NCBI GenBank assembly: GCA_950097015.1
Contig: CATNEN010000039.1
Location: 8,308,001 to 8,372,000 of the forward strand
Reading direction: 5' to 3'
Length of the DNA: 64,000 nucleotides
Source of the DNA: Macrostomum hystrix
Lineage: Eukaryota > Animalia > Platyhelminthes
A program made the translations under genes and the position numbers. The notes beneath the pieces were generated by a model. It was not told the origin of the DNA. It saw only the letters and a list, made by a program, of their open reading frames with translations, and searched no databases. Below, piece by piece: positions 18,099-59,200 of the stretch. The first letter of the stretch is position 1; the number at the start of each line of letters is the position of its first letter.

Positions 18099-18306
18099 TT
18101 GGCAGCAACCATCGTAGTCGTGCATTTATTTCAGCATGTGAGGTCCTGTTCGTGCTGTAAAACTTGCAGCTGTACAGCAGCCCATGCAGCCCATGCATGC
18201 TGTAGTGGAAATATTTTAGGGCAAAAGTCCGGATTTAAGAAATGACAAAACCGCAACAATTGAACAACCAAGGAGCAAGTTTTTTGTAAGTATATTTCAC
18301 TCACGA

Positions 18307-19775: not shown

Positions 19776-21652
19776 TCATTCGCCCGAAAGCTTGAAGCCA
19801 CAGACAGAATCCGTCTGCTCGGGAGTTAATGAATCCACGCCCCTCAGCAGCGCCTGTGCACTAATGATCCATTTGTGTTGCGAGTCTATGTGCTGGCTCA
19901 CAAAAGACTCAACGGAGTTCAGTCTGATCTCAACCAGGTCTATCGTACCGTCGATCTCTGCAAAAGTTTTGAAGCGTAAATAAAATTGTGCAATTTGTTT
20001 CGATGCCAATTTTCCAGCGACAACCGCAGAAGCCGGGATATTGGCAATATACTCACGATCGGAATCGATATACGTCTGCGGCGGTCCTTTCGAAAGGAAA
20101 GTTTCCTTGAACCGCTGAATGACGAACTGCACAATCTGGAAGTCGCGAGATGAATCAGCTTCACTGTCTTTAGAAGCCTCATAGCTTTCATTAAGGACGC
20201 TGACGAAGAAGTTGACGATAATGAACATGAGGAAGGAGACGTAGAACGAGAAGGCTAGCTTCGGCAGTAGTCCATTACTGCTGACTGTCTTCATGTCGAA
20301 CTTGCCCAGCATCGCAGTGAACATGGTGGACATTGTGCCTGCCGGCGAGTTAAACTCGTGCTGCACGCTGCCCAGCAGCAGGTTCATCAGCAGGCTGAAA
20401 GCAAAGAACACGACACAGAATACGACACCGAAGGAGGCCATCTGGCTGAGCGACAGTCGAAGAGTGATGAGCAGGTGCCGCAGGTTGCTGCTGAACCTGA
20501 CCAGACCCAGCAAAGATAGCTGCAGGAAAAATGTTGCTGCCCCCAGGAAGTAGTAAAAGTACTCGTTTAGCAGCAGCAGACTCCGCAGCTGAGGCCTGCC
20601 GCCGTTCACAGCAGCCTCGAGAGCAGTTCCAGTGTTGGCAGTGCGAATTCCGTAGATGACCCCAGCCGCGACCATGCACACTGCGACTCCCAAGTCCATC
20701 CAGTTCTCAAAGCTGCTCCAGAATTTGTAGAACTTCCTCAGCCGCGTGAAGAGAATGATTAGCCTAATCAGGACAACAATACCAGTAAGAATCTCTGCCA
20801 CCAGAGAGAAAACACCCACGGCTCCGACGTACCGGTAGAGACGGGTGCTCAGCAGCTGCTGGCTGACGAAGGCACCCCCGAATGGCTGCAGCTCCACTGC
20901 CATTGCCACTGAAGTGAACAGGTTGGCATCAGAATAGAATAGATCCAGCTCCACTGCCACAAAGCGAGTGTTCGAATCGAGCCAATTCAGTCCCTTCAAG
21001 TCAGAAAGGACCGCTCGGCTTTCATTGAGGCCATCTGGCAGCAGAGCCGTGAAACCACCTCCACGGTAATCGGCCAGCTTTCCGAAAAATGCTGCGCCGT
21101 CCGCTCGGTTCATGAAGGCCTGAGTGAGAAGCTCACTCGCGGAGAGGTTGCATGCCGCCTGCTCCGACCAACCGGGCGTAAAGCAGCGCGCCTCATCTTC
21201 GTCCTTGCTGCTGACCAGGCCGATGCTGACAGGTCGCCTCCGCCGCAGCTGCCGCACCGAAACACGGCTAAGTCGAAAGCCGCAGCCGTCAGCGATCAGA
21301 CGATTGGCTCCCGGCTTCGGGAAGATGGCTGGCAGGAAGCTGTTGTTGAGAACGTCGTATAGTTGGTCGACCTTGCCGGTTACTGACTCTAGGTCGGCAT
21401 ACGTGAGCTGTGACTTAAGGTTCTGGTGCAGTAAGAACGTTGTTGAGTCCAGGTTGCCATAGAAGATGCAGTACTGCAAAAATAGCAGCAGAATGGCAAG
21501 GCCGGCGTTCACAGTGCTACTGATGGCAGCTTGGCGCAGTGGGTTCCGCTTTGACCGAGACTGCAGCTCGTGCAGGTACACAACTCCCTCTGCGAGTGGT
21601 TGGGGCAGTCGCATTTGGACAAGTGACATGTGATTTCGGGATACAATGACAG
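19776..21652 (-). CDS. Polycystin terminal exon: TOP domain, six-TM polycystin cation-channel domain, C-tail
   Basis: [28 protein letters not shown], pore MLGKFD and S6 [14 protein letters not shown] motifs. Confidence 0.95.
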
Positions 21653-24600
21653 CTATTTAGCTGAACTATACGCACAAGGATGCAAAAATTTAAAAGTTTA
21701 GGTGACGTCAGCGGCATACCTCTTCTATAGATCTCATTGTAGTGCAGAACACGAACCAGCGGAGTGTGCTCGACATCGTAGTCTTTGCGGAAAATCACCA
21801 CCAGCGCGAATCCGATAAGGATTACCTGAACAGTTTATGAAAATCTATTATTCTGTGAAATTCACATCCTCTCTGCAGGTTACAATGGCATCTCGAACTG
21901 CACAAACCTTCAACGGCTGAACCAGCAGCGCTGTCTGAAAGAAGGACAGCACAAATGACAGCAGCCACTGCTGAGACTTTTCTTTTCCCCACTGCATGGC
22001 GTAGAAGACAAGAAAGACGCCAGCTCCGACCATGCTACCGAGAACCAGCGCCCAGCCAATGTACTGGCACCAGTGCGGCAGCAAGAACCGCTTAGGATTC
22101 GACAGAGCGCTCTGAGGCACCAGCGGAGTGCTGGCCGGATTGTCCGAGCGACAGTCCGCCTGTTGCATTTCCGAGCGGCCTGGCCTTCGAAATATGCCAG
22201 TCTGCAGGTGCACGGTGCGGTTCTCTTTTAAAAGCCAGTAAAGGCTTGATTTTTATGAGGTAATTTACTATTTTTACCTGATGGTTGTAGTTTTCTGAGC
22301 TAGTCGACTCGCTGGGTAAAACTGGGATGGGGGTCTGATCCCTGCTCCCTGCGTCTGGCTTGCGCTCCGATTTCAAAAAGAATATGGTGACAGCTGCAGA
22401 CCCTGGAAGGACTACGAGAGCTCCCAGGATGGACGTGACGAGAGTGTTGATCGACAGCGTGATGGGCCCGACGGTGATCATGTCGGAGGTGGACTGGCTT
22501 CCTTCACCGACGCCGTAGAACATGGCGTTGGCGATCATGGTCATGAAGAGCAGGCAGAAGCAGACTCCGAACCTCTGCAGGCGACTGAAGTTTGTGTCAG
22601 TGTCGCGTCTCACTACCGACATCCACAAGTGGTCATCCTGGAACTTTCGCTGCAGGTTAAACTTCACAAATCGCGGCTGGAATGCCAGAAGCTCCTTCGT
22701 TGCCAGCTTCACAATCACTGGAGGGTTGTAGCCAATGATGGGCTCCGTGTTGATAAAGACATACCTGCGAATCGCGAATCGAAATCACTTCTGTGAGGGC
22801 TCAATCATGCAGAAAATTGAGTGGATTAGCAGCAACAAAAAGATTGAGCAACTCACGCCGCATTGTAAAGCTGGTCAGTGATGACAATTTTTCTCAGGTT
22901 CCACGGGGCCACAGGTCGGACACCCTCCAGAACAACGCTGATTTGGGTGATGTCGCCCAGGTGCTTGGCAGTCGTCATGCAGAAATGACTGATGTCGCCA
23001 GAGAGAAAGCTCTGAAAAAACATGGTGGAAGAAGGGGTGACTGGCAGAGCGTCTAATGCGCTTGCCATGCGCACTAAGGCCCCTGAGCTCGATTCCGCGG
23101 TGAGGCCACATTAGTTTGTGGCGCAGCCGCGGAGAGAAGGCTTGGGGGCTTGTCGTGCAATTGACGCCCTTGAGGGCCAACCTCTAAGGTGCAGTGAGTG
23201 TATACTGCCTGACAATGAGAAACTCAGGACAAATGTAGACACCGTGTGTGAGCGTGTGCCTGCGTACGGTATCTGTATGAGTGTGTGCTCAGGAATCAGC
23301 GAAACGGGCAGAATTGCCTCCTCCCTTGCTGCGGGTCTAGTGCACCAAATTATGTACGATTGCCCACAGCCCTCCTGCAATTAAAAAAATGATTTTATGG
23401 TGAAAGAAGTAAAACAATAATTGTTTAATTTTAAATTCGAACATACTTGGCGAATTCCGTCAGACAGCGTTCTGTAAGTCTCCAAGTGAGTCCTACCAAA
23501 GAAGCTAATCAAAGGAGTGCCTGTAGTGCTGCAACCCTTCATTTTGTCCGTGTACACGTCGATCAGGTAGCGAAACTCGCAACCGCAATCATCCATTAGC
23601 GGCAGGTACATGAACTGCAAATTCAGTGGATTGAATGAACTGTCATTGTGACGAAGTAAAGTCAATTAGACTAGGCCTTAGAAACGCTCACTTTCTGCAA
23701 GTCCTTGCCATCGACGTGGCGGAGCCACACGGCGATGGGGATGAAGATAATCCACAGCGTGACCACCGTGGCAACAACGGCTGCGCTGTCAGCCAGCTTT
23801 CCCTGCCAGTTCTCAAACAGTGTTCCAAAGTCAATGAGATTCGGCATGATACTTAAGCCGACGCCGAAGCTGCCAAACAAGTTGCTGGTGAACCGCGGCT
23901 TGTTGGCCACCGAGTCAGGCTCTGGGCGGCAAAGATCCTCAGACGGTGTGGTCCACAATCTCAGAGTTGCATTCCACATGCTGCAGACGAAAAGCGCCAG
24001 ACCAAACTCGTAAGACAGGGACTGGTCTGGGCATGATGCGGCCGTCAGGGCACCGTTCGCCTCGCGCGCACAATCTGCGCGACCCACGCTGACATAGTAG
24101 GTCTTATTGTTCACCGCTGGTAAGTAGAATGATCCCTGACTCATATTTAGCATACTATCAACGGGTGTTGGCAGACGTCCAAGTTGCACGGACACCCTCA
24201 GCGTCTGGTTTTGGTTCAGCGGCAGCACTGTTACTTGTAAGATTCCGCGAGTAACGTTGACACTGTGGTACAATCTCAGCCAACGGTCTGTAGGAGTTGC
24301 ATTCACCAATATCCTGGAACCCGTGGCAGCTGGCAGAGAGAATGTGAATGCATCAGTGGTGCCGACTGCTCTTTTGATACGACAGCCATGTCTGCCAATT
24401 ATGAGGACAGGTGAATGGACGTTGGTGGTATTCTGCCATAGGTACGGACTGGGCCGAGAGAACAGGGCCTTCAGCGACTCGCACCCAGCTGTGCGAGGCA
24501 AGTTCACTTCACCAAAGTCTGACTCAAATGTGACGTTGTCTACTCCACTGCCATTTAGTTTGAGACCTTGTGCTGACACTGAATTGTCGGAGATGGAATA

Positions 24601-27600
24601 CGAAGTTGATGAATTCAGCAGTGTGTCTGTTACGCTGTCGATCGACCGAACCGTAGTTTCCACAACGTGCTCCAGTCTGTCACTTGTCTGCGGATCAACT
24701 TGACACGATGCGTTTGAGCAGGCGGTTTTTAAAGCTGCAGAATTTGCCGTGGCTTCTGACGCAACCCAGATGTTCGATCCGGTTAGCACTATGTCTGCAG
24801 TAATTTAGCATTGAGAGCATGCAGGGTAAAGTTCGGCTCACTCATTGCAAAATTAGAACTTTTAATGCGTTATACGTAAATAAGTATTTACCTGGTCCCA
24901 TGAAGGGCTTCGAGTCAGCTGGGAGTTTGTCGCCCAAGCGATTGAAGCTTTGGGCAATTTCCCAAAGTTTTTGTGAGCCTCGCTCCTGCAATCGATTAAG
25001 GTATATTATGGTAATCTTCAATTTCATGAAAGCAAATGTGGGTTGGACTCACTTGTGATTCAAGTGTCACTTGATTGACTCTTTCTACAGGTATTGCGGT
25101 TCTCAAGGCGTAATTCACTTGCTCAAGATCTGCAGGCGTGTCCACCGAGAAATTCGCAATGATAGCAATGAGCTTTGTCCGGAGCTACAGGATAATGTGT
25201 TAGATGGAAATTATTCTCTATTCTTCTTTACTTATTTTATGAGCTAGATTTAATGCGATTTTTATCTCGAAGCTAAAAAATACCTCCATCATTCTGATCT
25301 CATAGGCGGCTGTCTGCTCTGCAGTGGCATTGGAGCCCTCAGCGTCTTCGTTCTTGGCGTTCATCACTGAAGCCAGGCACACCACCGTGGTGACAGCTGC
25401 CTGCTGGTTTCCACTTCGCAGGTGCCGCTGCAAATCATCGTTAGATCCATCGAATATGGCGGAAAGATTAGCCAGCAAAACAGTCGCAGGCACAGGAGGC
25501 GGATACACCTGAGGGAAATCCCAAAATAGGAACTAGGCCTATTTGTGCAGCCCTAAACGTGACAATATTTGCATAAAGTTGCCACTTACAACAACATCGA
25601 ATATGAATGCGACCTTATCGCCGATGCTGTCAATGACATAGATATATGCGTCAGAGCTAAATCCTTGGGAGCTGGAGCCGACGGGGAGCAGCACCGGTGG
25701 GGAAGCTGCAGCTGGTCCATAGAACAGCAGAATGGTTCGCCGAGTTCCTTTTGGTCGAATGCGATACTCGTACGTGAGCCTGCTTGCAGTGACGTTGAAC
25801 TCCTGCCAGGCCCAGCACGAAATGCGGTAGTTGGTGATCATGGCGTAGCCGGATGTCGGCTGAACGGTGCAGTTGCCTCCGCTGGCGGGCTTGTTCACAA
25901 CGAACGTTTTGCTCACTGTCACAGGCCCCTCCTGACCGTAGCTGGACGCTGTTGTCTGCACCAGATATACAACACCGAGTTTCAAGGTATTGGCCTTGCG
26001 TATCACTAAATTTTTTGTAAAGCCTGAGAATGGTTTTCAGGTAGCAGTCAATTTCAAGCTGCACGAACACATTAGCTGTTACTTTGATTTGGTTAAATGT
26101 ACGTAACTCACCAGCGTCAGTGACTACTGCCATGTTATCAAAAGTGTTGTCAGAGAGTTCCCGCATTGCCCAGATGTACGAGAGATGAGCAAACTTTGTA
26201 CCGCAATTCGCAGTGCACTCAGCCTGGTAGATCAACGGCTTCGAACCTCCGACTTTAGTTTCACAGTTGCTCACGCATCTGGAAAAGTGAGCTCAAAAGA
26301 TTCGATAGACAGAAAAATTCTCGGTTTGTTCTTGATATTAAAGTCCTAAAAATGATAAAAACTTGCGAATTGAGATTCTTGAAATATCTTCTAAATGTTG
26401 GCTTACCGTTAAAAATAGTACAAGGCTTTTAACTATGTCGGTGTAAAAAAATGCGAATATAGAACATTTAACAGTAGAGAGACCACGGGGTATTTTAAAT
26501 ACCTACATTTCTCTTTGGTTCTGTGTCTCGCAAAATATTCAACCAATCCTCATGAAAACATGGGCTACAATTTTCCGCTCTATACGAAAAAACAACTTTC
26601 AGAGTCACAAAACACCGACATCGTCGAGATATTCAACGATTCTCGTCGGGCAGTCTGATGGCAAAACACTCACATGAAACATGCAGGTATCTCATTACGT
26701 GTTAGAGAAAAGCTTACACAATCAACACTGATGGCGCTTTCTGAGGTGCAATGTGAATCGACCAATCGGCTCTAGCGCTGCGGGAATCCTTGCTCAGAAA
26801 CACACGAATAACATAGGTGTGGTTGGGCAGCATGTGCCAGGTGTTTAGAGTGACCGCCGCCGATTCGTTTTGCTCCATGAATATCCCGATGCCGTTTCCA
26901 AAGCAGCCCGAAAAGTTGGTCATGCCCTGACTGTCTGGAAGGCTGATTCGCTTTGTCGTATCGCCAGGAAATGCCACTACCTCCGTCTCCTGCATGCAAA
27001 TCCAGCGGAATGCCATGCCAGTCAGGTTTGCTGAATCAACGTCCCAGTCCCGTGGGTTCAAATTAAAATGGACGGTGGCGTTATACATAGCGTAGCTTGG
27101 GGACGTAGTGCCGTTGAAGTCAATTGTTAGCGGCGTTTTAGTGACGTTGAGGTAGAAGGCGAACTCCGCAGACACTGGGGGTGTGACTGCGTTCATTGAG
27201 ACGTTCAGCAAAATCTTGTACAGACCGTACCAAAGAGTTCGGTTCGGCAGTCGAATTAGAAACGAGTCTGGCAGGCTGAGGTTGACTTGACCACCCAGCG
27301 AATCCTCCACGCGCCACCGGCGCACAGTGTCGCTGGTCTTTGTGCAGTTCAACTCTGGGTGGGCCTCCACAACCAGCTCCCGAGACCGTATAAGCTGCAC
27401 AGGACGTTCCAGATCCCACTGGGTCAGCTGATGGCCTTCATGCGTAAAGTTGAGTTTTGGTGCATCACACATCCAGTCAAGTACTAGAACTAGAGCCTCA
27501 GCCGTGTCGTTGCTGACGTGGTTAAAAGCTAACAGGTGGGCAGAGTAACTGCCAATGCTGGGATACACGTGGAAGAAGGCAAGGGACAAATTGCCGTATG

Positions 27601-48600: not shown

Positions 48601-51600
48601 TACTAGTGGTCCTCACTTCTACTAGTGGTCCTCACTTCTATTAGTGGTCCTCACTTCTACTAGTAGTCCTCACTTCTACTAGTAGTCCTCACTTCTACTA
48701 GTAGTCCTCACTTCTACTAGTGGTCCTCACTTCTACTAGTGGTCCTCATTTCTACTAGTGGTCCTTATTTCTTAGACGATCCGGTGCGAAAGTATTCCAC
48801 ATTCCGTATTAGATGAGCAATTAAACAATCTTAAAACTCTATAAAACTGTGAACTCTATAAAAAACGTCAAGCAGTAAAAAGTCAAATCAATATTATCTA
48901 GTCGCTGATGACGCTAGTGGACGATTCATAATTCTAATTGACTCAGTGCCTATATGACTCAAAGCAAAGATTTTATTTGCGACAGACTCCGGTCAGCTGA
49001 CCGCGATCTGACTTACTCAACGGTGATCCGTAGACCTCGAGCTCAGCAATCTTCATAGTGCAGCTTGGATTGCAGGTGCTGATTTTTGCTATACCGACAG
49101 TTCGCGTCACCTGCACGCGCATAACCAAAGCGACTTCAGAAAACGAGGAAATTGAGGATCAATCTTAACGCGACGGCCTCACCTGTCCAACATAAGCCCT
49201 CAGTGGATGTGGCATAACTTGGTAGAGATTCTGGGCAACAAAAATGGCATCAGTCGTGGGATAGCTGGACTGATTGCTGATGAAGACAGCAATGTTGACA
49301 TTCGGTTCTAGTGCCGGATTCTCTGAAATATAATAATTATAATTTAGTACATCTGCTCCAGTCGGAGCCAGGTGTGCAGCCAAGAGTACAGATGCGGCTT
49401 ACAGACGCGGCGCAGCGCACTGTATGGCTGTTCAGTCCATGGACTGCTGGGACGTCACACCCACCCTCAATTACCCCAGCTAATGCTGAAACAGCTGGTA
49501 ATGCAGAGTTAACTGTCTTGCTAAAGGACACAAATTGTTCTAGTATAGTCAGGAATCGAACCCCGACCTTCAAGTCTTGAGTCCGACGCTCTAACCACAG
49601 GCTTCCACCCCAGCTCTGAGCATTAATCGATTATGTTTATAATTTATTCGCAATCTGTACGCAACGCTAAAACAGAAGGTTCTGGCTCACAAAATTATGA
49701 CTTTTTTCTCTGCACCTTTTCTGTTTCTGCTATCCAACTTACGCTTCACATACGCAATGAAAGGCCAGACTAGAACAAACTCAACGTAGCACTGCGCAAC
49801 AAAGTCTATGGCGACCCATGGCAGAGTTCCTGTCTCGACCCAACAACCACCGTTGGAATTTCCCCTTCTGTCCCCGTCGATGAGGATAGCCGCGTTTTGC
49901 AGCGTGCTGCCAATCACTGTGCGGTATCGATGGATGGGCAAAACTGGCGGATCGTTGACTGATTTGTCTGTGGGAGTTGATTGCTCGAAAATCAATTTAA
50001 TCGTGTACAGTAAGATAATGATCGAGAGGAGTTTTAAATAATATACTATATTGTTATACGTTATTGTTTCTCATTTTTCACGTGAGCTTGAGACGTACTT
50101 GATGGGCAGCCATAGAGCATCCAGCTAGACTCCCAGCGCGGGCTGAAGCTGCTCTGATGTAGACGAATGATCCTTGCGTCGATCTCGGGAACAAAGCTTG
50201 CAAACGAAGCGAGCCAGGCAGTTGATACTGCCATTCGAGTCTGCAATTATTAGAAGCTGGGCGCTGGTGGCTTTGTTGCCGAGGCGATAGTAGAATCAAC
50301 AATGTTCCTTGTCGTTGAAGATGTTTTGAATTTCGTTAATGTAACTTCTAGTTAGAACAAGGAACTAGTTACACATACCAAAGAGCCAAAGGTGAATGAG
50401 AGCCCGTCGGTGGAATATGACACTTCAAATAGCAAGTTTTTAGTATAATAGCTCGGAGTGCTGCGGTCAGTCCCTGGCTGTATTCCGATGATATACAGTG
50501 TAACAAATCCAGAGAATGTGGCCTGTTAAAGAAATCGATTTATTTGCCTTGATCGTCTGCTTGGACAAACAAAGATGAAATAGGTGGAATGCCTCGAAGG
50601 AATAAACCTGTATCTTCAAACAACACACCTTACCTGAATATACTCCTTGAAATTACAGTCGGAATTCGGCTGTATCGGTGACCACATTCCGAGCTGTCGG
50701 TTATCTGTAAAAACCAATAGCGGCCGCTTGATTCTTGAGAGAATGAATGCTCGAATTCTAAGGGAAATTGAACAGGAATGAAAAAGGTTAGTCACTGGGA
50801 ATATCGAAGAGTACGTGTGCTCTAGTGTCATCGGATCCAGTCCCGAGAGTAGTGTAGCCTACAGTCTTGACGTCTACAGCGTGGTTGACGCTCAGCACTG
50901 ACAAGCTGATCAGAGGAACATCGCTGATGCTGATATTGACGCTCATCTGAGTCCAAGTCAGACTCATGGTAATGTAGTCATCCGTGACTGCAGGAACTGT
51001 GCTGTTGGCTAGAACCAGCATCGTGGCCAGAGTCAACCGACTAACTGAGTCTCCGGTGCGGACTGCGCAGTCAGTCGCGATCACTGAGGAGCCATTGCCC
51101 TGGATGGAGATCTCCCAGCGCGGCTGTGAAATAAATAAATATTTGCAGGGAGCTCTGGGCACTGGTACATCAGTTGGTGACACTAGACTCGCAGCCAGCG
51201 AGGAGGCAGTTCTGCCTATTTAGCTGACTCCTGAGCAAACGCGCACACTGATACTGTACACAGGCACACAAAGGAATGGGATGATTCCGCCTTAACTCAC
51301 GTTACTCAAGATGTCGATATGCTCATAAAAGGACGTCAGCCACAGCTTAAGCCCAGTCTTTCGCAGCCTCGCTTGCAGTTGAAGGCATCGGTCCCTACTG
51401 GCGTTGCTCATCACTACTGCTGGAACACGACGAATCAGGTTCGGGAACGTAACAACCTCTTCGAATTTCTCTACAAAAGTATCATTTTAAAGAGTGTTTT
51501 AGTCTAGGAAATTCTCAGAACTATCGGTTGCTTTTAAAGGTGATGTCGGACCAGTTGTTATTTACAAACCTTCTTCGGCTTGAAGCGAAATACTGGCAAT

Positions 51601-54600
51601 GATAAGTTTTCCAGTACCAACGCCTTGCAGAATGACGACATACCGGCCGCACAGCTGCTTCAAGCAGTTCACCCGCATTGGGGAGTCGGCGTTCTCCGGC
51701 AGGTTAAACCGATAGCACTCTGGCCAGGTCTCGAAGGCCAGGTCTTTCAGACTGGAGTTCCATTCGCTACCTACTCTCACAGTGAGATTATTGATTGCTG
51801 AAAATGACGAGTGATAAATCTCAGTGGTCACCTTATTGATGTGCTTGGACTTAACAATAATCATTTCTCAAATATATGGGGGGTCGGCGCCAGAGCGGTT
51901 AACGCGCATGTCTCTCGCAGCAATGTCCCGAAGTTCGATTCCACGGCGAGGCCACATTTATTTGGGGCGCAGTGGCAGAGAGAAGGCTTGGGAGCTTGTC
52001 GTGAAATTTAAACACAGTGAGAGTGTACACTGCCTGACGATGAGAAAGTCAGGGCAGATGTACACACCTGTGTGAGCATATGCCTGCGTACAGTATTTGC
52101 GTGCGTGTGTGCTCAGGAGTCAGCGAAATGGGCAGAATGGCCTCCACTCTGGCTGCGGGTCTAGCGTCACCAAATGATGTGCCATTGCCCGCAGCCCTTC
52201 TGCAATTATTATTATTATTATTATTCTCAAATATGAATGAGCAGGTTCATCATTATAGCCCAAGTTTTCAATTCCCTTTCAAAAAATCAGATCGATTTTT
52301 GTGCCCCGCAACGTGTTAATGACTTACTAGCAGATGAGAAAGTCAAGTACATCTGTCCAAAGCAGTGGCTGGACTTCAAGTCGATGAGGATTCTCCAATA
52401 GTGCTCAGGATCTGGAGCACTTATACCATTTGTATTTAAAGTGACTGCCTCCTCAGTCTGGCTTGGATTTTGCACCAGAATATCGTTAAAGTAAAAAGTC
52501 TTCTGGTAAGTGACTGAAAACACTTTTTTGCTGTCTGATGCAACCGAAGGGTAGTATAATGAAGCTGCGAAAAAGTAATTGTGAGGCAATTTGTGCTTTT
52601 TGAGCGCTGCTTTTTAATCTAGAACGTAACTATTTGAAACTACGTGACTCACCGCAAAGCAGGCTGTTAAAGTCGGTGTGGCAACTCTCTGTACTTCCTG
52701 CGCTGGTAATCTGACATTTTGTCACGGCGCTAAAGGTGTCTAAAAGTCACATTAAAAAACAACTTAGTTTACGAGCTGCCATTCGTTTTATAGAACCAAC
52801 CGTAAAAAGCAGGCTCACCCGTAATGCAAGACCTGTTGAAGCCAGCGCGCGTGCCAGTCCAAGGCACACAGGCCCGACCGGAAGCGCTCATTGTGACGCC
52901 ATAGTCATAGAATTCGGAGTCGGCCCCGACAACAGTGCATTTAAAATGATCTGCAGTTTTTTTATTACAATAAAGCTCACCATTATGTTCTGAGACTGTA
53001 ACTGAGCACGATGCTGATGCTCAATATGGGTGATAAAATGCAAAATTTTACTTTGAGAATCTTGGTAACACAAGAAGGACGAAGGGGTATTTCAAATGCA
53101 CACATTTTTTCTGTATATCTCAAAATATTCTACCAATAGCCCTGAAAATCCAAAAAACACTGGCTATAATTTACCGCCGTAATCGATGAAACAGCTTCCT
53201 GAATCACAAAAAATCGGCATCGTCGAGGTATTCAACATTATCGTCGGGGTGTCTGGTGGCTAAAACCACTAATATAGGCATAATAAATCTGCTCACAAAA
53301 TTTCATCATGTCACCCTATCGGCTATTAATTTTTACTCTTTTTGATAGATTATGACAATATTGATACTTTTTTAACCAATATAAATACACTAAGAGGCTT
53401 ATTCAGAGCGATCTTAGTTGTCCTTGTCACCATGACGATGCTGACGTCGGTCGGCTCCGTCGGACGGAAAACTTTTATTCATACAGTGGACTTTCACAAA
53501 ATTCGGTCATTCAGTTTCGGAGCTATTGTGTGACATTATTAAATTAGATTTTTTGAATGAAACAATGGTTTAATAAAGTTAATTTTGATTTCGCTACTGT
53601 CCTTCTTGAATTTCATTTTGCGTTCGTTCTGGGGTGGCTGCTCCGTCTGGTCCGAAGATCATCCGTTTGCCACAAGTCCGTAAATCAGAAACTTATAGAA
53701 GAAAATTTAGTTTTATTTTGAGATTAGTCATAAAACAAAATGTGAAGATAACAATAAACAGATTATTAAATTCAGGGGTGCCATTGCCCCTTCCAACACC
53801 TATAGACACCTATAGTCTCATCTTTCCTCGGTCTCATCTCTCCCCTGTCTCGTCCATCCCGTTTCTCATCTCTTCTCTATCTCATCTCTCCCCTTTCTCA
53901 TACTCCTACAGTAAATGTGACCCTCCTGTTGTCTTTTAGGTTCTCTCTGTGGCCCGTAATACTCGTTGGTTTGCCGACCCCTGTGATGTAATTAATTTAT
54001 TTATCTCATATGCCGAATTAATCGAAATTAATGCAATTAAAAATATTAACATTTTCAGTAGACAAAACGTTTCATTAATATTTACCTTCATATCCTAAAG
54101 TAGCTCCCAGAATTGCACTTTTAGCACTCCGCCTGTAGTTGCTGCTGGAGGAGGACACATTCACTTCCAGTTTGCCGGGAATTCCATACAGCAACGGCAC
54201 CAAACAGTCTTTTGGAATTGGGAACAATGAGATGGTTGGTTGGATCCTAGAGAACGATCACCACTTTCACTGTTGATAACTTGATACTTCACTGTTGATC
54301 GATACTTACTTTGCTTGACGCGCAGCGGATAGTACAGAACGTCGTCACTCGTGCCCGAGTAACAGTCGGTCTCCGAGCTCATCACATAGGCGACACTTCC
54401 GGAATTTCCACAGGCTAACAATTGACTGCTTTCTCCATCCAGATTCATGGCAGAAAACTCGCGAAACATACTGTTTGACGAAACGATTGTGCCCACTGCT
54501 CCATAGTTACACGAGAATCCAATCGTGAGCACAATGGTGTGCCAGTCATCGGGGGAAACTGAAATTGTTTTGAGCAGTTGATCTCCTGAAAAATCGAACT

Positions 54601-57600
54601 TTTTGGCGCTATCGACGTTTCGACGTCTATCTAACGGGCCGATTTCCATTCTACCGACCAACTCATGGACTGACTCACTGGTGTACTTATCCACTTCGCA
54701 GATGAACTTGTGAGCGGAGCCGCACGGTACGTCCATGATCAGGCCTCTGTACAAGTCCAGGGCGGCGCAGTTCGATGGAGGCCGGCCCATGTAGAACGCG
54801 CCGGCCTCAACGGGCGAGCCGTCGCTCCAGACCCACTGGTTGGTGCTGGAGTTGCGCTGCAGGCCGATGTGGGCGTAGCCATAACTACTGATGCCAGTAT
54901 CCCCGGGCCTGGTTCGCGTTTGATAAAAAGCAAACAAGCTAAATTACTCAGTTAGTAGTGTATCACGAACTATATTTGTATTTTAAAAAATTAAACTTCA
55001 GGCGTTTCAAAACACAAAAATATGGAAACTAGAGATAGAAAATCTCAGTTCTGAAGAGGACATTCGACATTAAATTCGATAAGATGCTCGACCAGACTGG
55101 TCGGCTGTTACAAGACAATACTGGACAATACTGGACAATACAAGACTCACGCGGCGCTGACGAAGCTTCGCTCAACCGTAGTCTTGGCGTTTAATAGGCG
55201 ACCCCTAAAGCCGGCCCAGGTGTGATCTGAGCATAATTGGTTTGCGATGGACAAAGGTACCTTCGTGTTGAACATGTACCAGCAGCTCTGCATCGACGAC
55301 ATCCAACCAGGTGGACAAACTGAAGTTGACAAATAGCAGACACAATTTTCTAAAGTAGTAAATGAGAAATTACTGTTGGAAAGTACAATCACCATCTTTT
55401 ATCTGGCAGCCTCGCGCAGAGTCGACCGCCGTAACAGCGGAATCTTTCGTGAAGTGTAGAATAATGCTCAGCGGGGCAATGGAGAATGGAATAATGAAGG
55501 TCTCGTCTGAGTAGGTCACGGGGAACTGCTCGGAGAAAAATGAAGTTAGAATTTACTTAAGGATGTTGTAGATTCTTTCGTGAACATTTTACTATTTATG
55601 TCATACTATGTACGAGCCGTAGTGTCAACTAACGGGATTTAGTCGAACAAAATGAGAATGACAAGCTTCACTTTAAATATCGGTGTAAACTTCTGTGAGT
55701 AGTTAACTTTGAGGCAATATCAAGGCCTAATCTTAGCTGCACACCGACAATGATCAACATGTAGCCTTTAAAAAACTCACGATCCAGAGGCTGTCATTCC
55801 AGGCGTGTGTCATGTTGAAAAAGCCCTCAGCAGACACCAGCTGGTAGGACAGCCAGAAACCAACATCAGCTGACAGGCCGCGAACAGTGAAGGCAGTCAA
55901 ATAGTGGGGCCGAGAGAAGTTCAGCTGCACGAGTGTCTCCAGACTGGTTTTCCAAGGCGCAGAAATTGAAATATACGCGCTCTCAATGCTTGGACAAGCT
56001 GAAGCAGTGAGTCAGAAGGCCGTCAGTCAGTCAGTTTATGGAGTTTAGATTAAAAATAACTTCTGAATGCCCTAAATAATACTAAGTGCCCTAAAAGATA
56101 GGAAGAGGTACTAACCAGTCGGACTCGGATAGCCAACAGCATCCAGCTGCAGGATGCACTTTGTGATGCAAGTCGCTGCCTCGAATTGCACCAGCTGAGT
56201 TTCGATCTGCCTCTTGAGCGGTGTCAGGCAGGGGCTTGTCTGCATATCTGCGCAAGAGACACTATGAGAAATCTGAAATTCAAAGATAAAGTAGTCTCAC
56301 AGTAGTGCAAAAACACACAGTCAAGCTGTCGCTCTTGGACAGGACATCGCTGGCATTTAGTTAGCCATGTCATAAAAACATTTTATCGAGTTGAAAAGAT
56401 AATTTGGGCTCAGTGCGCCTCAGAGCAATTGGAAAGTAAATTTAGTAACTGAGGATAGGCGCGACGTTGAAAAAAGGAGGTACACATCATTCGGCAGCTT
56501 TGGTCGTCGCTTCTGGCCCGTGGGTCATTGTGGACCATTCTCTGCTTAAAAAGCAAGACGAAATAATAGAAAGGTTTGCAAAATTCAAGGCCGAACTTTA
56601 CCCTGTTGTTAATAGAATCGGTTAAATAAACAGGCTGAGTAACCAGCAGCGATTTAGTCGGCGAATGGGCCGCATAGAAACTGGAAACTCGTCCAGGGTC
56701 AACTGTCCTAGTAACGTTTCCCATCACGAGGAAGCCAGTGACGGTGAAGTTGAAGGGAAAGTAGATCCGAGCCCAAACTTTATCCCCACTCAAGTAGGCG
56801 CCCTGAACGATGCTCCCATCAGGCTTGACTTGAAAGCTGAGCGAGGGCAGGCCTTGGTCTGCTTCTGGGTTGCCAAGGACCACCCACGACATTGGAAAGT
56901 AGCGACCGAGGCCCATGGGCGACTGGCTGAGCATTGCCAATTGTGCTGCACCTGGTTTGGTGTGTTGAAAATGTCACCAAAAATATCAGTAAATTCAGAA
57001 TGTTTAAAATTTTTTGGATATTCTGCTGTTTGAGACTTTGGATTTCCTGTCTTAACAGGCCCACTTTTCAGGCCTATTGATAAAAAAATTAATGACAACC
57101 CGAGTAGCTAAGTACGAGTATCAAATTCCTGATACAAAAAAGTCGACGTGAAAATTATTCACGTTCAAGAACGGTTTTGACATTTCCATTCACTCATTTT
57201 CCTGCCATTTCCTGCTACACCACATATAATATAGCTTTGGCTGCTCACACAGAAGTGCATGTGTCTAGAGCACGCATGACCGGACGAAGCACGGTCAAAA
57301 ATGTCACAATTCAAATCATACTGGGACAACTATAGACTGAACTCTGGAAATAGATGGTCTCAACTCTGGAAATGCACTTATAGCTGTCAATCGTTTCCAT
57401 TATGCAGCTCCATCTACTTGTCTATGGTCCCAACTCTGGAAATGCACTTATAGCTGTCAATCGTTTCCATTATGCAGCTCCATCTACTTGTCTATGGTCC
57501 CAACTCTGGAAATGCACTTATAGCTGTCAATCGTTTCCATTATGCAGCTCTATCTACTTGTCTATGGTACCAACTATCAGTACCGTCGCTAAGTGCTCGC

Positions 57601-57812
57601 CCCGAACCGGGTCAGATGATATGGGTTTGGAGTGAAATGAAAGCTGCAGTATGCCGCCTTAAGATCAGGCCAAGAATAACTTTTTGAGAACAGATTGTGG
57701 TGTGTGTGTGCCAAACATAAATTAAAAAGTTCAACTCCTCATACTCACCAATAGATTGGGCCTTGGTGCCAAAGATGCAGCATATTACAATGCTAAGGAA
57801 TATTGTCAACAT
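19776..57812 (-). CDS. PKD1L-like: Giant polycystin-1/REJ-family (PKD1L-like) gene, many exons, multi-lectin ectodomain
   Basis: Signal-peptide exon 57812-57749; co-linear minus-strand exons with GT-AG borders; PKD, REJ, GPS, PLAT and channel domains; stop at 19776; minus-strand AATAAA at 19320-19315. That everything is one transcript is inferred. Confidence 0.7.
21720..23630 (-). CDS. Polycystin exons: PLAT/LH2 domain and TM2-TM5
   Basis: [30 protein letters not shown] (PLAT); DDHLWMSV...[18 protein letters not shown]; [10 protein letters not shown]; [15 protein letters not shown]. Confidence 0.93.
23033..23383 (+). mobile_element. SINE family A, copy 4 (intronic, within the PLAT region)
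   Basis: Full-length family sequence. Confidence 0.9.
23692..24794 (-). CDS. Polycystin exon: GAIN/GPS region and TM1
   Basis: [13 protein letters not shown]...[19 protein letters not shown] followed by a hydrophobic helix and DGKDLQK. Confidence 0.9.
24893..26278 (-). CDS. Polycystin exons: REJ module
   Basis: [46 protein letters not shown] and VIDSIG are typical REJ motifs. Confidence 0.9.
26483..26690 (+). mobile_element. MITE-like repeat family M, partial copy
   Basis: Aligns by eye with 53084-53270 and with the arms of 37278-37660 (GGGGTATTTYAAATAC...CATCGTCGAGATATTCAAC). Confidence 0.65.
26718..30220 (-). CDS. Polycystin 3.5-kb exon: Ig-like/PKD repeats and start of REJ
   Basis: PKD signatures [41 protein letters not shown] and repeated CxNxVS; S/T-rich with many N-glycosylation sequons. 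Confidence 0.93.
30301..31873 (-). CDS. Polycystin exons: fibrinogen-related (FReD) domain, EGF/EB-like Cys module, Ig-like domain
   Basis: [31 protein letters not shown] (FReD); CYADASC..NSAC...CLCKSGF (EGF/EB). Confidence 0.85.
32720..41680 (-). CDS. Polycystin ectodomain exons: alternating F5/8C-discoidin, C-type lectin, F-type lectin and PAN-like modules
   Basis: F5/8C: [36 protein letters not shown]: [30 protein letters not shown]: [21 protein letters not shown]. Internal boundaries approximate. Confidence 0.8.
37278..37660. mobile_element. MITE-like element family M, about 380 bp, inverted ends
   Basis: Left CACGGTGTATTTCAAATACCCAC; right GTGGGTATTTAAAATACCACAG is its approximate reverse complement; AT-rich and non-coding. 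Confidence 0.7.
41945..42614. repeat. GC-rich low-complexity region with about 12-bp (GCTGCCTCCCCC/GTTGTCTCCCCT) repeats; probable unclassified element
   Basis: Abrupt high-GC block in an AT-rich intron; continues after the LINE at 43903. Confidence 0.6.
42046..42111. mobile_element. 66-bp miniature TIR element (hAT- or P-type ends)
   Basis: Perfect 22-bp inverted repeat CATGGATGAATGAATAGAATTC (42046-42067 / 42090-42111); 8-bp direct flank CGTTGTCT (42038-42045, 42112-42119). Confidence 0.8.
42615..43902 (+). mobile_element. 5'-truncated non-LTR retrotransposon (I/R1/Loa group) encoding RNase H and a CCHC zinc knuckle
   Basis: Open frame about 42616-43785: [65 protein letters not shown] tail; 14-bp TSD AGAACCGGTGGAAC at 42601-42614 and 43903-43916. 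Confidence 0.93.
44570..56951 (-). CDS. Polycystin N-terminal exons: F5/8C, C-type lectin, F-type lectin and kringle-like modules
   Basis: [33 protein letters not shown] and CPQGF..WFWHDG..FVCQ (CTL); IDGD..PWVAIDF, CGRYVVI (FTL); [19 protein letters not shown] (F5/8C); NCL...[10 protein letters not shown] (kringle-like). Boundaries approximate. Confidence 0.8.
44757..45095 (-). mobile_element. SINE family A, copy 5
   Basis: Head, body and tail on the minus strand with small deletions. Confidence 0.88.
46420..46510 (-). mobile_element. SINE family B head fragment
   Basis: Minus strand AGCATAGTGGTTAGAGC...GGTTCGAATC then TTTGTGTCCTT. Confidence 0.65.
46518..46886 (+). mobile_element. SINE family A, copy 6
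   Basis: Head, body and long (ATT)n tail. Confidence 0.9.
48462..48770. repeat. 19-bp minisatellite (CTTCTACTAGTGGTCCTCA)n
   Basis: About 16 tandem copies. Confidence 0.95.
49330..49606 (-). mobile_element. tRNA-derived SINE family B, near full length, CORE-like motif
   Basis: Minus strand AGCCTGTGGTTAGAGCG...GGTTCGATTCC, then TTGTGTCCTTTAGCAAGACAGTTAAC and an AT-rich tail. Confidence 0.75.
51128..51270 (-). mobile_element. SINE family A, 3' fragment (copy 7)
   Basis: Family 3' half only. Confidence 0.8.
51878..52225 (+). mobile_element. SINE family A, copy 8
   Basis: Head with GTTCGATTCC B-box, body, (ATT)n tail. Confidence 0.9.
53084..53270 (+). mobile_element. MITE-like repeat family M, partial copy
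   Basis: Similar to 26483-26690. Confidence 0.65.
57361..57570. repeat. 70-bp unit triplicated in the first polycystin intron
   Basis: Copies start at 57361, 57431 and 57501. Confidence 0.93.
57749..57812 (-). CDS. First coding exon: signal peptide [21 protein letters not shown]
   Basis: Hydrophobic core, small residues before a likely cleavage site, GTGAGT donor in phase 1 matching the acceptor at 56951. Confidence 0.8.
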
Positions 57813-58295: not shown

Positions 58296-59200
58296 AAACT
58301 AGTATGAGCAGTTATAAACTAGTATGAGCACTTACAAACGATTATGAGCAGTAATAAATTAGTATGAGCACTTATAAAATAGCATGAGCAGTTATAAAAC
58401 TAGTATGAGCACTGATATACTATCATGAGTAGTTATAAACTAGTATGAGCAGTTACAAACGAGCATTAGCAGTTATGAACTAGTATCAGCAGTAATAAAC
58501 TATAATGAGAAGTTATAGACTAGCATGAGCAGTTGTAAACTAGTATGAGCAGTTGTAAACTAGCATGAGCAGTTGTAAACTAGTATGAGCAGTTGTAAAC
58601 TAGTATGAGCAGTTGTAAACTAGTATGAGCAGTTGTAAACTAGTATGAGCAGTTGTAAACTAGTATGAGCAGTTGTAAACTAGTATGAGCAGTTGTAAAC
58701 TAGCATGAGCAGTTGTAAACTAGTATGAGCAGTTGTAAACTAGTATGAGCAGTTGTAAACTAGTATGAGCAGTTGTAAACTAGTATGAGCAGTTGTAAAC
58801 TAGTATGAGCAGTTGTAAACTAGTATGAGCAGTTGTAAACTAGTATGAGCAGTTGTAAACTAGCATGAGCAGTTGTAAACTAGTATGAGCAGTTGTAAAC
58901 TAGTATGAGCAGTTGTAAACTAGTATGAGCAGTTGTAAACTAGTATGAGCAGTTGTAAACTAGCATGAGCAGTTGTAAACTAGTATGAGCAGTTGTAAAC
59001 TAGTATGAGCAGTTGTAAACTAGCATGAGCAGTTGTAAACTAGTATGAGCAGTTGTAAACTAGTATGAGCAGTTGTAAACTAGTATGAGCAGTTGTAAAC
59101 TAGTATGAGCAGTAATAAATTATAATGAGCAGTTTTAAACTAGTATGAGCAGTAATAAATTATAATGAGCAGTTTTAAACTAGTATGAGCAGTAATAAAA
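58296..59200. repeat. 20-bp satellite (AAACTAGTATGAGCAGTTGT)n
   Basis: About 45 copies, homogeneous core and degenerate edges. Confidence 0.97.

Follow-up and report, generated by a model that had tools for sequence, protein, structure and literature searches.

The interval from 57,812 to 19,776 in this 64,000-nucleotide stretch of the Macrostomum hystrix genome (the window) raises the question of whether its exons for lectin-type folds and its exons for a polycystin belong to one gene. Most likely they do, and the interval is one giant polycystin-1 (PKD1/REJ)-family gene, with an ectodomain that is a mosaic of lectin-type folds. All features below lie on the minus strand unless stated otherwise.

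One open frame from signal peptide to channel

Approximately 70 exons, from the ATG at 57812 to the TGA at 19778–19776, can be joined into one frame through GT-AG sites, giving a threaded length of approximately 22.3 kb, or approximately 7,400 amino acids. The first-pass annotation had expected a product of 'well over 5,000 aa'; the protein is indeed very large, and that estimate was too low. Coding signal is continuous along the whole exon chain, every junction is phase-compatible and there is no in-frame stop or other break. The median intron is 94 bp, and many donors are GTGAGT or GTAAGT. Large introns occur at 54.7–53.3 kb and 44.5–41.8 kb; the second, intron 28 (41831–44503, 2.7 kb), owes its size to a retroelement fragment, antisense and GC-rich, with a plus-strand open reading frame (42913–43785) that matches RNase_H (E = 5e-11) and zf-RVT. 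The gene's introns hold transposon and SINE-like insertions. The exon model is a rough threading from DNA alone in which several of the chosen splice sites are weak, exons 8, 10 and 63 are each supported by one paralog, two junctions were set by hand and the splice junction of the fourth C-type lectin-like domain (33608–33038) was resolved by hand.

Exon 1 (57749–57812) encodes the start codon and, as proposed at first pass, a signal peptide, and ends in a phase-1 donor (G|GTGAGT) compatible with the acceptor at 56953/56952. Upstream of the first transmembrane segment (TM1), no hydrophobic stretch other than the signal peptide looks clearly transmembrane-like: a search for such a segment between the two found none. 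There are 110 N-glycosylation sequons, which we count as a sign of extracellular character.

The genome contains at least ten paralogs, this gene among them. Paralogs A, B and C, compared in full, are collinear with the chain exon by exon over 56952–20049, in 66–76 pieces, and paralogs D and E are collinear over the parts compared. These five share the exon layout, and six more loci have a discoidin exon upstream of, and on the same strand as, a REJ exon; these two exons lie 4–6.5 kb apart at eleven loci. Identity to paralogs A–C is 47–51% in the arm, 47–56% in the PKD-REJ region and 49–64% in the transmembrane core. The equivalent of intron 28 in paralog C is only 60 bp long, and the lectin arm and the polycystin core therefore appear to be inherited as a unit.

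Because the paralogs are collinear, the frame is continuous, no internal transmembrane segment interrupts it and gene models of the annelid Dimorphilus join the same domains in single proteins, the best explanation overall is a single minus-strand gene of approximately 70 exons encoding a type-I, approximately 11-TM PC1-family protein of approximately 7,400 residues (probability approximately 0.82). The single-gene structure and the run of same-strand exons into a polycystin core, both put forward at first pass, are thus supported, the run by the chain that reaches the stop at 19776–19778.

The polycystin core

Starting from the PKD repeats, a 3.5-kb exon (26718–30220) encodes the repeats (best at 28897–28667; Pfam PKD, E = 2e-17) and the start of the REJ region (27358–26720; E = 2e-16). 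It has 276 homologs in a representative protein search; its own product is not in that collection, and no match exceeds 40% identity. REJ continues in exons 59–60 (25590–26278; Pfam REJ, E = 0.002, with tblastn matches to homologs), in which profile positions 209–281 follow on from the part in the 3.5-kb exon. The GAIN-like exon (23692–24794) contains a furin-type site, RIKR (24381–24370), a GPS (23985–23863) and TM1 (23784–23722). The GPS named at first pass is present, but motif comparison shows it to be degenerate, with a different ten-residue sequence in place of CxCxHLTSFG and the self-cleavage triad lost; the furin-type site lies upstream of it. A PLAT domain, also in the first description, has no direct Pfam match in the window at E 0.5, and is supported instead through homology: the PLAT domain of Macrostomum lignano protein P0013 (residues 1723–1827) maps to 23617–23405 and 22769–22284, and exons 65–66 (22857–23614) are assigned as PLAT-equivalent by homology only.

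Exon 67 (22269–22764) holds the end of PLAT, TM2 and TM3, as judged from hydropathy and from a profile with the paralogs that matches human polycystin-1 (6a70_B, E = 7e-16). The last exon (19776–21587) encodes TM5, the polycystin (TOP) domain (21272–20838; Pfam Polycystin_dom, E = 5e-22), the PKD channel (20831–20178; PKD_channel, E = 7e-18) and the terminal TGA. Pfam thus bears out the PKD, REJ, polycystin and channel domains expected from the first reading. Among solved structures, the last exon matches PKD2L1/PKD2 (E = 2e-33) and PKD1L3 (E = 1e-17). Its pore filter, MLGKFD (20312–20295), has LGK instead of LGD, and sequence therefore favours a role as a PC1-type partner subunit over one as an independent channel. 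A crude hydropathy scan counts 10 transmembrane segments, against the 11 proposed.

A mosaic extracellular arm

The arm carries four C-type lectin-like domains (CTLDs) at the positions first given, each formed by an N-half exon and a C-half exon. CTLD 1 (54679–55319) has a Pfam Lectin_C match above the cut-off (E = 9e-7, 30 bits), matches Dimorphilus CTLDs and lacks both EPN and WND. CTLD 2 (45731–46322), which resembles CTLD 1 and lacks WND, matches Dimorphilus CTLDs by tblastn and HMM (E = 1e-8). CTLD 3 (35384–36244, two exons and a tail) falls just below the Lectin_C cut-off (E = 8e-4, 20.6 bits), and CTLD 4 (33038–33608; E = 0.045) resembles it. Lectin_C matches six exon translations from the window and paralogs taken together. 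The WND calcium/sugar motif is absent from all four CTLDs, three also lack EPN/QPD and an EPS triplet is retained only in CTLD 4; these domains are therefore not predicted to bind sugar in the classical calcium-dependent manner. Closer to the membrane, a fibrinogen-related domain fills a single exon (31315–31873), which passes the Pfam Fibrinogen_C cut-off (E = 9e-8, 32.6 bits; best E = 7.5e-13 among exon translations of the window and paralogs) and has counterparts in M. lignano and Dimorphilus proteins (E = 1e-16 to 7e-18). It is followed by a cysteine-rich module (31081–31289) that matches Pfam EB, with E = 6e-4 for the window and a best E of 3e-6 when paralog exon translations are added. 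The fibrinogen-related and EGF-like modules of the first description are thereby recovered, the latter as an EB module.

The first-pass annotation also described many F5/8C-discoidin domains. One tandem-discoidin exon is a firm assignment from profile searches: 34174–34808 encodes the end of one domain and the whole of a second, and the profile of exon 34158–34820 with five paralogs matches, among solved structures, factor V/VIII C1–C2 (E = 7e-12), neuropilin b1b2 (E = 5e-6) and lactadherin (E = 1e-5 to 3e-5). Pfam F5_F8_type_C matches five exon translations from the window and paralogs (best E = 4.5e-4), although no single window exon alone gives a Pfam discoidin match. An iterative profile adds five C-terminal segments in the ectodomain. 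The first, 56257–56123 (E = 3e-9), belongs to discoidin-like module 1 (exons 2–3, 56116–56951), which has a 21-residue core motif, a weak hhalign match to the discoidin core (E = 0.01) and counterparts in paralogs A, B and C. The second lies at 50099–50240 (E = 3e-13), where the paralogs match the first-round profile. The third, 47885–47751 (E = 1.5e-9), follows a module of no assigned type in exons 21–22 (47744–48349), a region with no match among solved structures. The last two, 38896–38744 and 36941–36792 (E = 9e-17 and 6e-16), lie in exons 34–40 (36803–38899), which are kept in four paralogs. The ectodomain is thus predicted to carry at least seven discoidin-like modules.

Other parts of the arm are conserved modules of other or unassigned fold. 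Exons 4–5 (55393–55998) encode a beta-rich module with 43–54% conservation in the paralogs and no Pfam match. A cysteine-rich exon (52819–52989), once labelled kringle-like, is conserved at 43–62% in the paralogs and has no Pfam match at E 0.5. Exons 11–12 (51570–52564), which by eye resemble an F-type lectin (…GRYVVILQG…), form the first copy of an internal repeat and match neither Pfam nor solved structures; the second copy lies in exons 29–30 (40959–41830), conserved in four paralogs, with the homology found by internal comparison at 41218–40959. Neither these two labels nor the PAN-like one, all from the first pass, gain support from Pfam or solved structures. A second duplicated unit, the beta-sandwich module Y, occurs at 50796–51123 and 39319–39798 (hhalign probability 97%, E = 2e-10); copy 2 carries an RKRKRR insert (39486–39469), and its AlphaFold2 model is beta-rich, with a pLDDT of 63 and best fold matches of only Z 4.2, too low to assign the fold. 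Exons 18–20 (49017–49967) encode a jelly-roll-like module ending in …KIAELEVYG that is conserved in the paralogs and has no Pfam match. Directly before the PKD repeats, the module at 30301–30877, which resembles the start of the next exon, is probably Ig-like; its exon HMM finds M. lignano, Dimorphilus and metagenome proteins (E = 5e-35 to 6e-11). For more than half of the arm, no fold could be assigned by Pfam, solved structures or fold comparison.

Proposed assembly and alternatives

The predicted protein begins with a signal peptide and places approximately 6,300 residues outside the cell, comprising at least seven discoidin-like modules, four CTLDs, one fibrinogen-related domain, EB/EGF and several beta-sandwich modules of no assigned type, some of which lie in a block that is duplicated internally. 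The core follows in the order PKD repeats, REJ, GAIN-like domain, TM1, PLAT-equivalent, further transmembrane segments, polycystin (TOP) domain and six-TM PKD-channel domain. A proprotein convertase may cleave the protein in place of self-cleavage. The product could join PKD2-type subunits in a complex as its only PC1-type member; the genome has six high-scoring PKD2-type loci (at least six such loci in all). The long arm could bind extracellular ligands or pass on force, thereby gating or regulating the channel; the first-pass annotation had suggested that glycan, microbe, gamete or mechanical sensing could be coupled to a TRPP channel in this way. If planarian, annelid and sea-urchin relatives are a guide, the likeliest sites would be ciliated sensory cells or sperm.

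A reading that keeps the single gene and stands at somewhat below even odds is that the arm does not sense sugars at all: it would be a long tether, stiff or extensible, that binds proteins and serves mechanosensation or cell–matrix adhesion, its lectin-type folds being likened to the PKD and REJ repeats of PC1. The motif losses in the CTLDs fit such a role, and discoidin and fibrinogen-related folds are often protein or lipid binders. The arm is conserved about as well as the core, a poor fit to a fast-evolving recognition surface. Force unfolds PKD and REJ domains (PMC1934368), and PKD1-like genes of planarians and Platynereis have roles in flow and vibration sensing (PMC11448475, PMC6294549). 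Set against this, ten or more divergent paralogs built to one layout point to ligand specificities that have diversified, and sea-urchin REJ1 binds egg-jelly glycan via its lectin domains (PMC1934368).

An improbable reading splits the interval into a gene for a secreted multi-lectin protein (57.8 to approximately 31 kb) and, next to it, a conventional PKD1-like gene (approximately 31–19.8 kb). This arrangement implies duplication as a pair, or operon expression with trans-splicing, and trans-splicing or operon-type processing is known in Macrostomum. The two large introns offer possible boundaries, and M. lignano P0017, P0152 and P0153 start near the fibrinogen-related domain with little upstream, perhaps as truncated models. 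Yet the frame passes every junction with no stop, transmembrane segment or break in the chain, and the gaps in paralog C that match the gene's introns are mostly 60–100 bp, and a terminator plus promoter therefore do not fit there. Moreover, the fibrinogen-related, EB and Ig-like exons run directly into the PKD exon in both flatworm and annelid, and Dimorphilus models carry both halves in single proteins. Least likely of all is a young pseudogene, an intact-looking but silent or decaying copy: the large family does have damaged members (an in-frame TAG in the REJ exon of paralog B and several stops in the copy at C29:3.66 Mb), a transcript-derived protein of this copy is absent from the protein collection searched and the introns have taken up mobile elements, but approximately 7,400 codons are open over approximately 70 exons with canonical splice sites, and a protein divergence of 36–53% from the paralogs with exon structure kept argues for long-term purifying selection on the lineage.

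Comparison with known PKD1-family proteins

The single gene has its closest architectural counterparts in Dimorphilus gyrociliatus, in the models DgyrCDS14438 (CAD5126282.1; 6,071 aa), DgyrCDS14890 (5,744 aa) and DgyrCDS14777 (CAD5126713.1; 5,543 aa). DgyrCDS14438 and DgyrCDS14890 likewise combine F5_F8_type_C, F5_F8_type_C_2, Lectin_C, Fibrinogen_C, PKD, REJ, PLAT, Polycystin_dom and PKD_channel, the latter with PAN_1 in addition (the models with the full domain set are P0007 and P0157, P0157 being the one with PAN_1). DgyrCDS14438 and DgyrCDS14777 have the same order as here, CTLD … fibrinogen-related – (EB) – Ig-like – PKD/REJ – core, and a degenerate GPS (FTSNLFGS) with RKKR at the alignment position of RIKR. 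These uncharacterised automatic models from a different phylum are only 22–42% identical to this gene in the shared parts and 1,300–1,900 residues shorter; of their distal arm, only the CTLDs and, weakly, the discoidins can be aligned.

The closest named relatives of the core are M. lignano PAA69298.1 (P0013; 2,685 aa) and A0A1I8JK18 (P0153; 3,185 aa), with 27–49% identity across PKD, REJ, GAIN-like, PLAT and channel regions. P0017, P0152 and P0153 share the fibrinogen-related, EB and Ig-like modules, and P0013 shares the degenerate GPS and has an RVKR site. These proteins are paralogs, not orthologs, of this gene, with models less than half its length that lack the distal arm and may be truncated. 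Sequence comparison places the gene in a flatworm–annelid subgroup that has lost the GPS self-cleavage triad and carries a furin-type R-x-K/R-R site approximately 190 residues upstream. We found no paper describing this domain architecture, in keeping with the initial view that no described family member has such an array; the domain set is, however, already predicted in the Dimorphilus models of 5,700–6,100 aa, and these models together with the ten or more paralogs here make the novelty weaker than first stated.

Human PC1 shares a C-type lectin domain, PKD repeats, REJ, GAIN/GPS, PLAT and 11 TM segments with this gene, but lacks discoidin or fibrinogen-related modules and retains a cleavable HL|T GPS. 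It also has LRR, WSC and LDL-A modules. PC1 is 4,303 aa long, with 16 PKD repeats (PMC1934368), and its N-terminus, lectin domain included, is reported to activate the PC1/PC2 channel (PMC7728438). The sea-urchin SpREJ proteins, a multigene family of ten (SpREJ1–10) with SpREJ1–4 on sperm, are likewise PKD1-family members with CTL, EGF, PKD repeats, REJ, GPS, PLAT and up to 11 TM segments; at 1,450–3,716 aa they are reported to have carbohydrate-recognition domains only in SpREJ1–3, and no discoidin or fibrinogen-related domains are reported (PMC1934368). SpREJ3 is cleaved at its GPS (PMC1934368), whereas the triad is lost here. The descriptions of planarian pkd1L and Platynereis PKD1-1 give these proteins conventional ectodomains, much shorter than the arm here, and mention no lectin or discoidin arrays (PMC11448475, PMC6294549). 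Both are spiralian PKD1-like genes expressed in ciliated sensory neurons, and flow or vibration responses depend on them together with a PKD2-like partner (PMC11448475, PMC6294549); functionally, they offer the nearest precedent for the gene described here.

A continuous exon chain for a probable single gene of the polycystin-1 family

The minus strand of the window is lined, from ~57.9 kb to 19.8 kb, with stop-free pieces bearing a coding signal, as scored by training on the confident core exons. Read as a gene of the polycystin-1 (PC1) family, these pieces form a chain of ~70 exons, from an ATG at 57812 to a TGA at 19776-19778. Exon 1 (57812-57749) encodes 21 residues and closes with a phase-1 donor, G/GTGAGT; joined to the acceptor at 56953/56952, it brings the first conserved exon into frame. 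All but two junctions were threaded by dynamic programming on lengths and phases only, using only GT-AG sites near conserved blocks. The two remaining junctions, CACAG/T at ~33284 and TTCTAG/TG at ~30877, were set by eye, and both coincide with the starts of paralog alignments. The threaded coding sequence is ~22.3 kb, and its introns have a median length of 94 bp. Its roughly 7,400 predicted codons show that the first-pass annotation, with a rough estimate of well over 5,000 aa, was low. Summed alone, the conserved blocks give ~7,500 residues.

The decisive evidence for this predicted chain is comparative. The 220 Mb assembly (42 contigs) contains at least 10 close copies of the exon encoding the PKD and REJ domains, and at eleven loci a copy of a discoidin exon lies 4-6.5 kb upstream of the PKD/REJ exon on the same strand. 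Three paralogs were compared over their full length, A (C39:16.64-16.69 Mb) and B (C39:20.43-20.48 Mb) on the same contig and C (C7:9.670-9.701 Mb) on another, and two further ones, D and E, over partial stretches. Paralogs A, B and C match the window exon by exon from 56952 to 20049, with order and orientation kept, in 66-76 aligned pieces of 30-78% identity; D and E are likewise collinear with the window over the stretches compared. The introns, dispersed repeats excepted, are not conserved between window and paralogs. Identity to A-C is 47-51% in the arm (the ectodomain upstream of the PKD/REJ core), 47-56% in PKD-REJ and 49-64% in the transmembrane core. Since these values are comparable, constraint on the arm is similar to that on the rest of the gene.

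The chain could have been broken at three flagged stretches, at 31-33, 41-45 and 52-54 kb, but all three proved to be ordinary introns. The 2.7 kb gap from 44.5 to 41.8 kb contains an antisense retroelement fragment, and the corresponding intron of paralog C is 60 bp long. A scan of the ectodomain exons found no convincing transmembrane segment between the signal peptide and TM1, and the same exons carry 110 N-glycosylation sequons. Reading from the DNA, we put the probability that the interval is a single gene at about 0.8 to 0.85. The predicted product is a multi-pass protein of PC1 type that enters the secretory pathway and bears a lectin-fold arm of ~6,300 residues.

Not every copy in the genome is intact. 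The PKD/REJ exon of paralog B has an in-frame TAG (L011, G000:C39:20468178-20468252) and another family copy, at G000:C29:3660506-3664033, has three stops; some family members may be pseudogenes. Another PKD1-like gene, more distantly related, is found on this contig ~146 kb past the high end of the window (G000:C39:8518039-8528392, minus strand), with a REJ exon 30% identical to that of the window gene and a PKD_channel match at E 7e-19.

Polycystin core

All searches and folds were run per exon, so that intron-split domains entered as separate exons, never as spliced protein. The REJ domain is nonetheless clear in the 3.5 kb exon 26717-30301 (Pfam E 1.7e-16, 60 bits against a cut-off of 25) and runs on into 25660-26292 at consecutive profile positions. 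It is preceded in the 3.5 kb exon by two stretches of PKD repeats (Pfam E 2.2e-17), and multi-PKD proteins match 29.0-28.0 kb repeatedly in tblastn searches. The last exon combines a polycystin (TOP) domain (Polycystin_dom E 5e-22) with a six-TM channel (PKD_channel E 7e-18), and against solved structures it matches PKD2L1/PKD2 at E 2e-33 and PKD1L3 at E 1e-17. The profile of exon 67 matches the corresponding region of human polycystin-1 (E 7e-16). No direct Pfam match to PLAT was obtained at E 0.5 in exons 23384-23665 and 22095-22784, where the domain is split over three unjoined exons; the PLAT domain of Macrostomum lignano PAA69298.1 (P0013, 2,685 aa; 24 bits against a cut-off of 23) maps onto these same exons. 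A crude exon-by-exon Kyte-Doolittle scan finds 10 transmembrane segments, one in exon 64, two in exon 67, one in exon 68 and six in the last exon, as opposed to the eleven expected of the PC1 family.

The selectivity filter of pore-forming TRPP subunits of PKD2 type is L-G-D. In the window, the filter position reads M-L-G-K-F-D by eye (20312-20295), with Lys where PKD2-type subunits have Asp. This LGK filter fits an accessory subunit of PC1 type, not a PKD2-type one. The genome contains six strong PKD2-type loci, which are candidate partners of the gene product.

The closest named proteins to the core come from M. lignano, at 27-49% identity. The product of the 3.5 kb exon is absent from the representative protein collection, because no match there exceeds 40% identity. 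The best database match to this exon is MEE4247216.1 (P0001/P0151), 40% identical over 846 aa. That entry, from a contig of 4.9 kb, bears the label 'PKD domain-containing protein, MAG: Kangiellaceae bacterium', but animal DNA seems to have been assigned here to a bacterial genome bin.

Lectin-like and fibrinogen-related domains of the arm

Pfam searches by exon recovered the core, three of the four C-type lectin-like domains (CTLDs) and the fibrinogen-related domain. The four CTLDs, each divided over two exons, lie where the first-pass annotation had placed them, at 55319-54679, 46322-45731, 36244-35384 and 33608-33038. The first scores 30 bits against Lectin_C, above the cut-off of 22.6, and the third (20.6 bits) and fourth (14.9 bits) fall under it; the second is identified by matches to CTLDs of the annelid Dimorphilus (E 1e-8). 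The half-exon layout is common to all four. The positions of the EPN/QPD triplet read RPP, QPS, APV and EPS, so that only the fourth keeps an EPS, and the WND positions read MDV, none, WSA and WTA, with WND kept in none of the four. The classical sugar site is therefore not predicted, and we call the domains 'lectin-like'.

The fibrinogen-related domain occupies a single exon and matches Fibrinogen_C at 32.6 bits (cut-off 22, E 9e-8) over profile positions 43-202 of 221; five exon translations from the window and its paralogs match this family, with a best E of 7.5e-13. An EB/EGF module follows, and next comes a probably Ig-like module common to M. lignano and Dimorphilus.

Pfam searches by exon gave no discoidin, kringle, PAN or F-type lectin domain in the window, because most domains are intron-split. 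Three domain labels proposed at first reading found no support in wider searches. For the F-type lectin, a PF22633 search of the genome at E up to 10 gave no match inside the window among the best 150 candidates scored; one exon translation per half reached E 0.03 for F-type lectin/F5_F8_type_C_2, and a nine-sequence profile of the F-type-like half-domain exon matched nothing in solved structures. A scan of 227 exon translations at E 0.05 gave neither kringle nor PAN, and the same holds for 52772-53020 at E 0.5 against Pfam. Domains of these three families may be hidden by intron splitting.

Discoidin and unassigned modules

Exon 34158-34820 alone gives weak matches, all to discoidin proteins. 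As a profile with five paralogs, it matches the factor V/VIII C1-C2 folds, namely pseutarin-C C1-C2 at E 6.6e-12 and FVIII at E 3e-11, and the top 53 of the 59 matches listed are all discoidin proteins. Two discoidin domains are represented in this exon, the first by its end and the second in full. An iterative profile finds more discoidin C-terminal segments at 56.2, 50.2, 47.8, 38.8 and 36.9 kb. The arm would thus contain at least seven discoidin modules, of which the six beyond that of exon 34158-34820 rest on this in-house profile of C-terminal segments, which could drift. F5_F8_type_C is matched by five exon translations of the window and paralogs together (best E 4.5e-4), and by no window exon scanned singly. 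Genome-wide searches with PF00754 and PF22633 gave many matches elsewhere and none in the window; because only the best 125-150 candidates were scored, this blank is weak negative evidence. The genome has well over 100 exons matching F5_F8_type_C_2 or F5_F8_type_C, arranged in tandem arrays at many loci on C1, C2, C3 and C7 (for example C1:6.62-6.64 Mb and C3:4.45-4.46 Mb) and unrelated to the window gene.

The arm also contains an internal duplication, in which the exons at 52.6-50.1 kb repeat those at 41.8-38.7 kb. Within the duplicated block lies module Y, a beta-sandwich with copies at 51123-50796 and 39798-39319. AlphaFold2 models of module Y reach a pLDDT of 49 from 5 sequences, which is unusable, and 63 from 9 sequences, with a beta-rich fold for which Foldseek gave nothing at E 0.001 or better. 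The best matches of a wide VIA search, a legume lectin and galectins, reach Z 4.2, which is under the usual chance level, and module Y keeps no assigned fold. Profiles of four unassigned exon groups gave nothing significant against solved structures; designed TIM barrels matched at E 0.004 without any aligned stretch, and we discarded them as noise. Nor did hhalign relate the 'F-type-like' exon or exon 21 to the discoidin profile.

Putative cleavage sites

Current models of PC1 maturation and of tethered-agonist signalling give a central role to autoproteolysis at the GPS. The GPS of aligned relatives follows the consensus CxCxHLTSFG, as in CLCNHLTSFG of scallop and CECTHLTSFG of amphioxus. 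The self-cleavage triad HL/T(S) is missing before TM1 in the window, where the motif (stretches of 10 and 11 residues) has the His, Leu, Thr and both Cys all substituted. M. lignano P0013 and Dimorphilus DgyrCDS14438 (P0007) show the same kind of substitution, and the GAIN-like region around the degenerate GPS is homologous.

Upstream of the GPS we identified a furin-type sequence, RIKR, at 24381-24370. Its counterparts in the alignment are RKRR (paralog A), RSRR (paralog B), RVKR (M. lignano) and RKKR (two Dimorphilus proteins); paralog C has lost the site by deletion, and the scallop protein has no such site. Across the flatworm-annelid clade, GPS self-cleavage seems to be lost and apparently replaced by a predicted furin-type site, which makes a natural experiment on whether polycystins depend on self-cleavage for their function. 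An insert of module Y (39469-39486) carries the basic run RKRKRR in the window and KRRKRS in paralog C, and no such run in the aligned paralogs A, B and D. It may be a second convertase-type site.

Repeats and neighbouring sequences

Intron 28 (41831-44503) holds a GC-rich (63%) insertion with an antisense open reading frame of 290 aa at 42913-43785 (plus strand), which we assign to a retroelement fragment because it matches RNase_H (E 5e-11) and zf-RVT in Pfam. A 12-base tandem repeat at 42112-42234, translating as GRQQ/GETT repeats, adjoins it. A dispersed SINE-like element of ~300 bp, with a recurrent 28-residue translation, has at least six copies in the window (51870-52250, 46498-46860, 44800-45100, 23050-23400, 17800-18100 and 16035-16370) and dozens within paralog introns, where it occurs in either orientation. 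Further tandem repeats lie in an intron at 48463-48765 (19-base unit, 16 copies, 97% identity), in intron 1 at 57354-57575 (70-base unit, 3.2 copies) and just upstream of the gene at 58296-58500 (20-base unit, 10 copies). Elsewhere, a plus-strand open reading frame of 269 aa (1638-2447) encodes a transposase of a Tc1/mariner-type element (DDE_3 E 1.5e-17). A minus-strand open frame of 417 aa (4898-6151), with a 'Serine_rich' protein-interaction domain (E 2.5e-16) as in CAS/p130Cas scaffold proteins, is probably an exon of the downstream neighbour gene.

Discussion

The gene described here is a prediction from DNA. In its proposed working, a convertase would cleave inside the GAIN-like region, the product would assemble with PKD2-type subunits, and ligand binding or force on the arm would regulate the channel. 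That the arm reads glycans and that it is a mechanical or protein-binding tether stand at roughly even odds, and by analogy sensory cilia or sperm would be the likeliest sites of action.

A broader reading, which we consider unlikely when taken as a whole, is that an undescribed branch of the PC1 family is common to flatworms and annelids. In this branch, convertase cleavage would have replaced GPS self-cleavage, and the ectodomain of lectin-type folds would have grown to ~3,500 residues upstream of PKD/REJ in the annelid and, in the flatworm, to more than 6,000 ahead of TM1. The at least ten divergent paralogs would then be a receptor repertoire, each arm with its own ligand (glycan, gamete coat, microbe or matrix), gating a common channel of PKD2 type in sensory cilia or sperm. 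Macrostomum is suited to RNAi and in situ work, and a repertoire of at least ten genes could be tested there for roles in sensation or fertilisation.

The first-pass annotation knew of no family member with such an ectodomain. This stands for open papers, in which we found no description of the architecture and, in those searched, no report of discoidin and fibrinogen-related folds in PKD1-family proteins; papers on planarians and Platynereis make no mention of lectin or discoidin arrays (PMC11448475, PMC6294549). In public databases, however, the architecture is already predicted, because two gene models of Dimorphilus gyrociliatus, DgyrCDS14438 (6,071 aa) and DgyrCDS14890 (P0157, 5,744 aa), share one set of Pfam domains: discoidin, F5_F8_type_C_2, C-type lectin, fibrinogen, PKD, REJ, PLAT, polycystin domain and channel. 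DgyrCDS14890 also has PAN_1. These models unite the lectin arm and the polycystin core in single proteins, as we read the window gene, and DgyrCDS14438 and DgyrCDS14777 keep its order from the fibrinogen-related domain inward. In sea-urchin REJ proteins, which are 1,450-3,716 aa long, C-type lectin domains occur only in SpREJ1-3 (PMC1934368). At a predicted ~7,400 residues, the window protein would be ~1.7 times the size of human PC1 and twice that of the largest sea-urchin REJ protein (PMC1934368).
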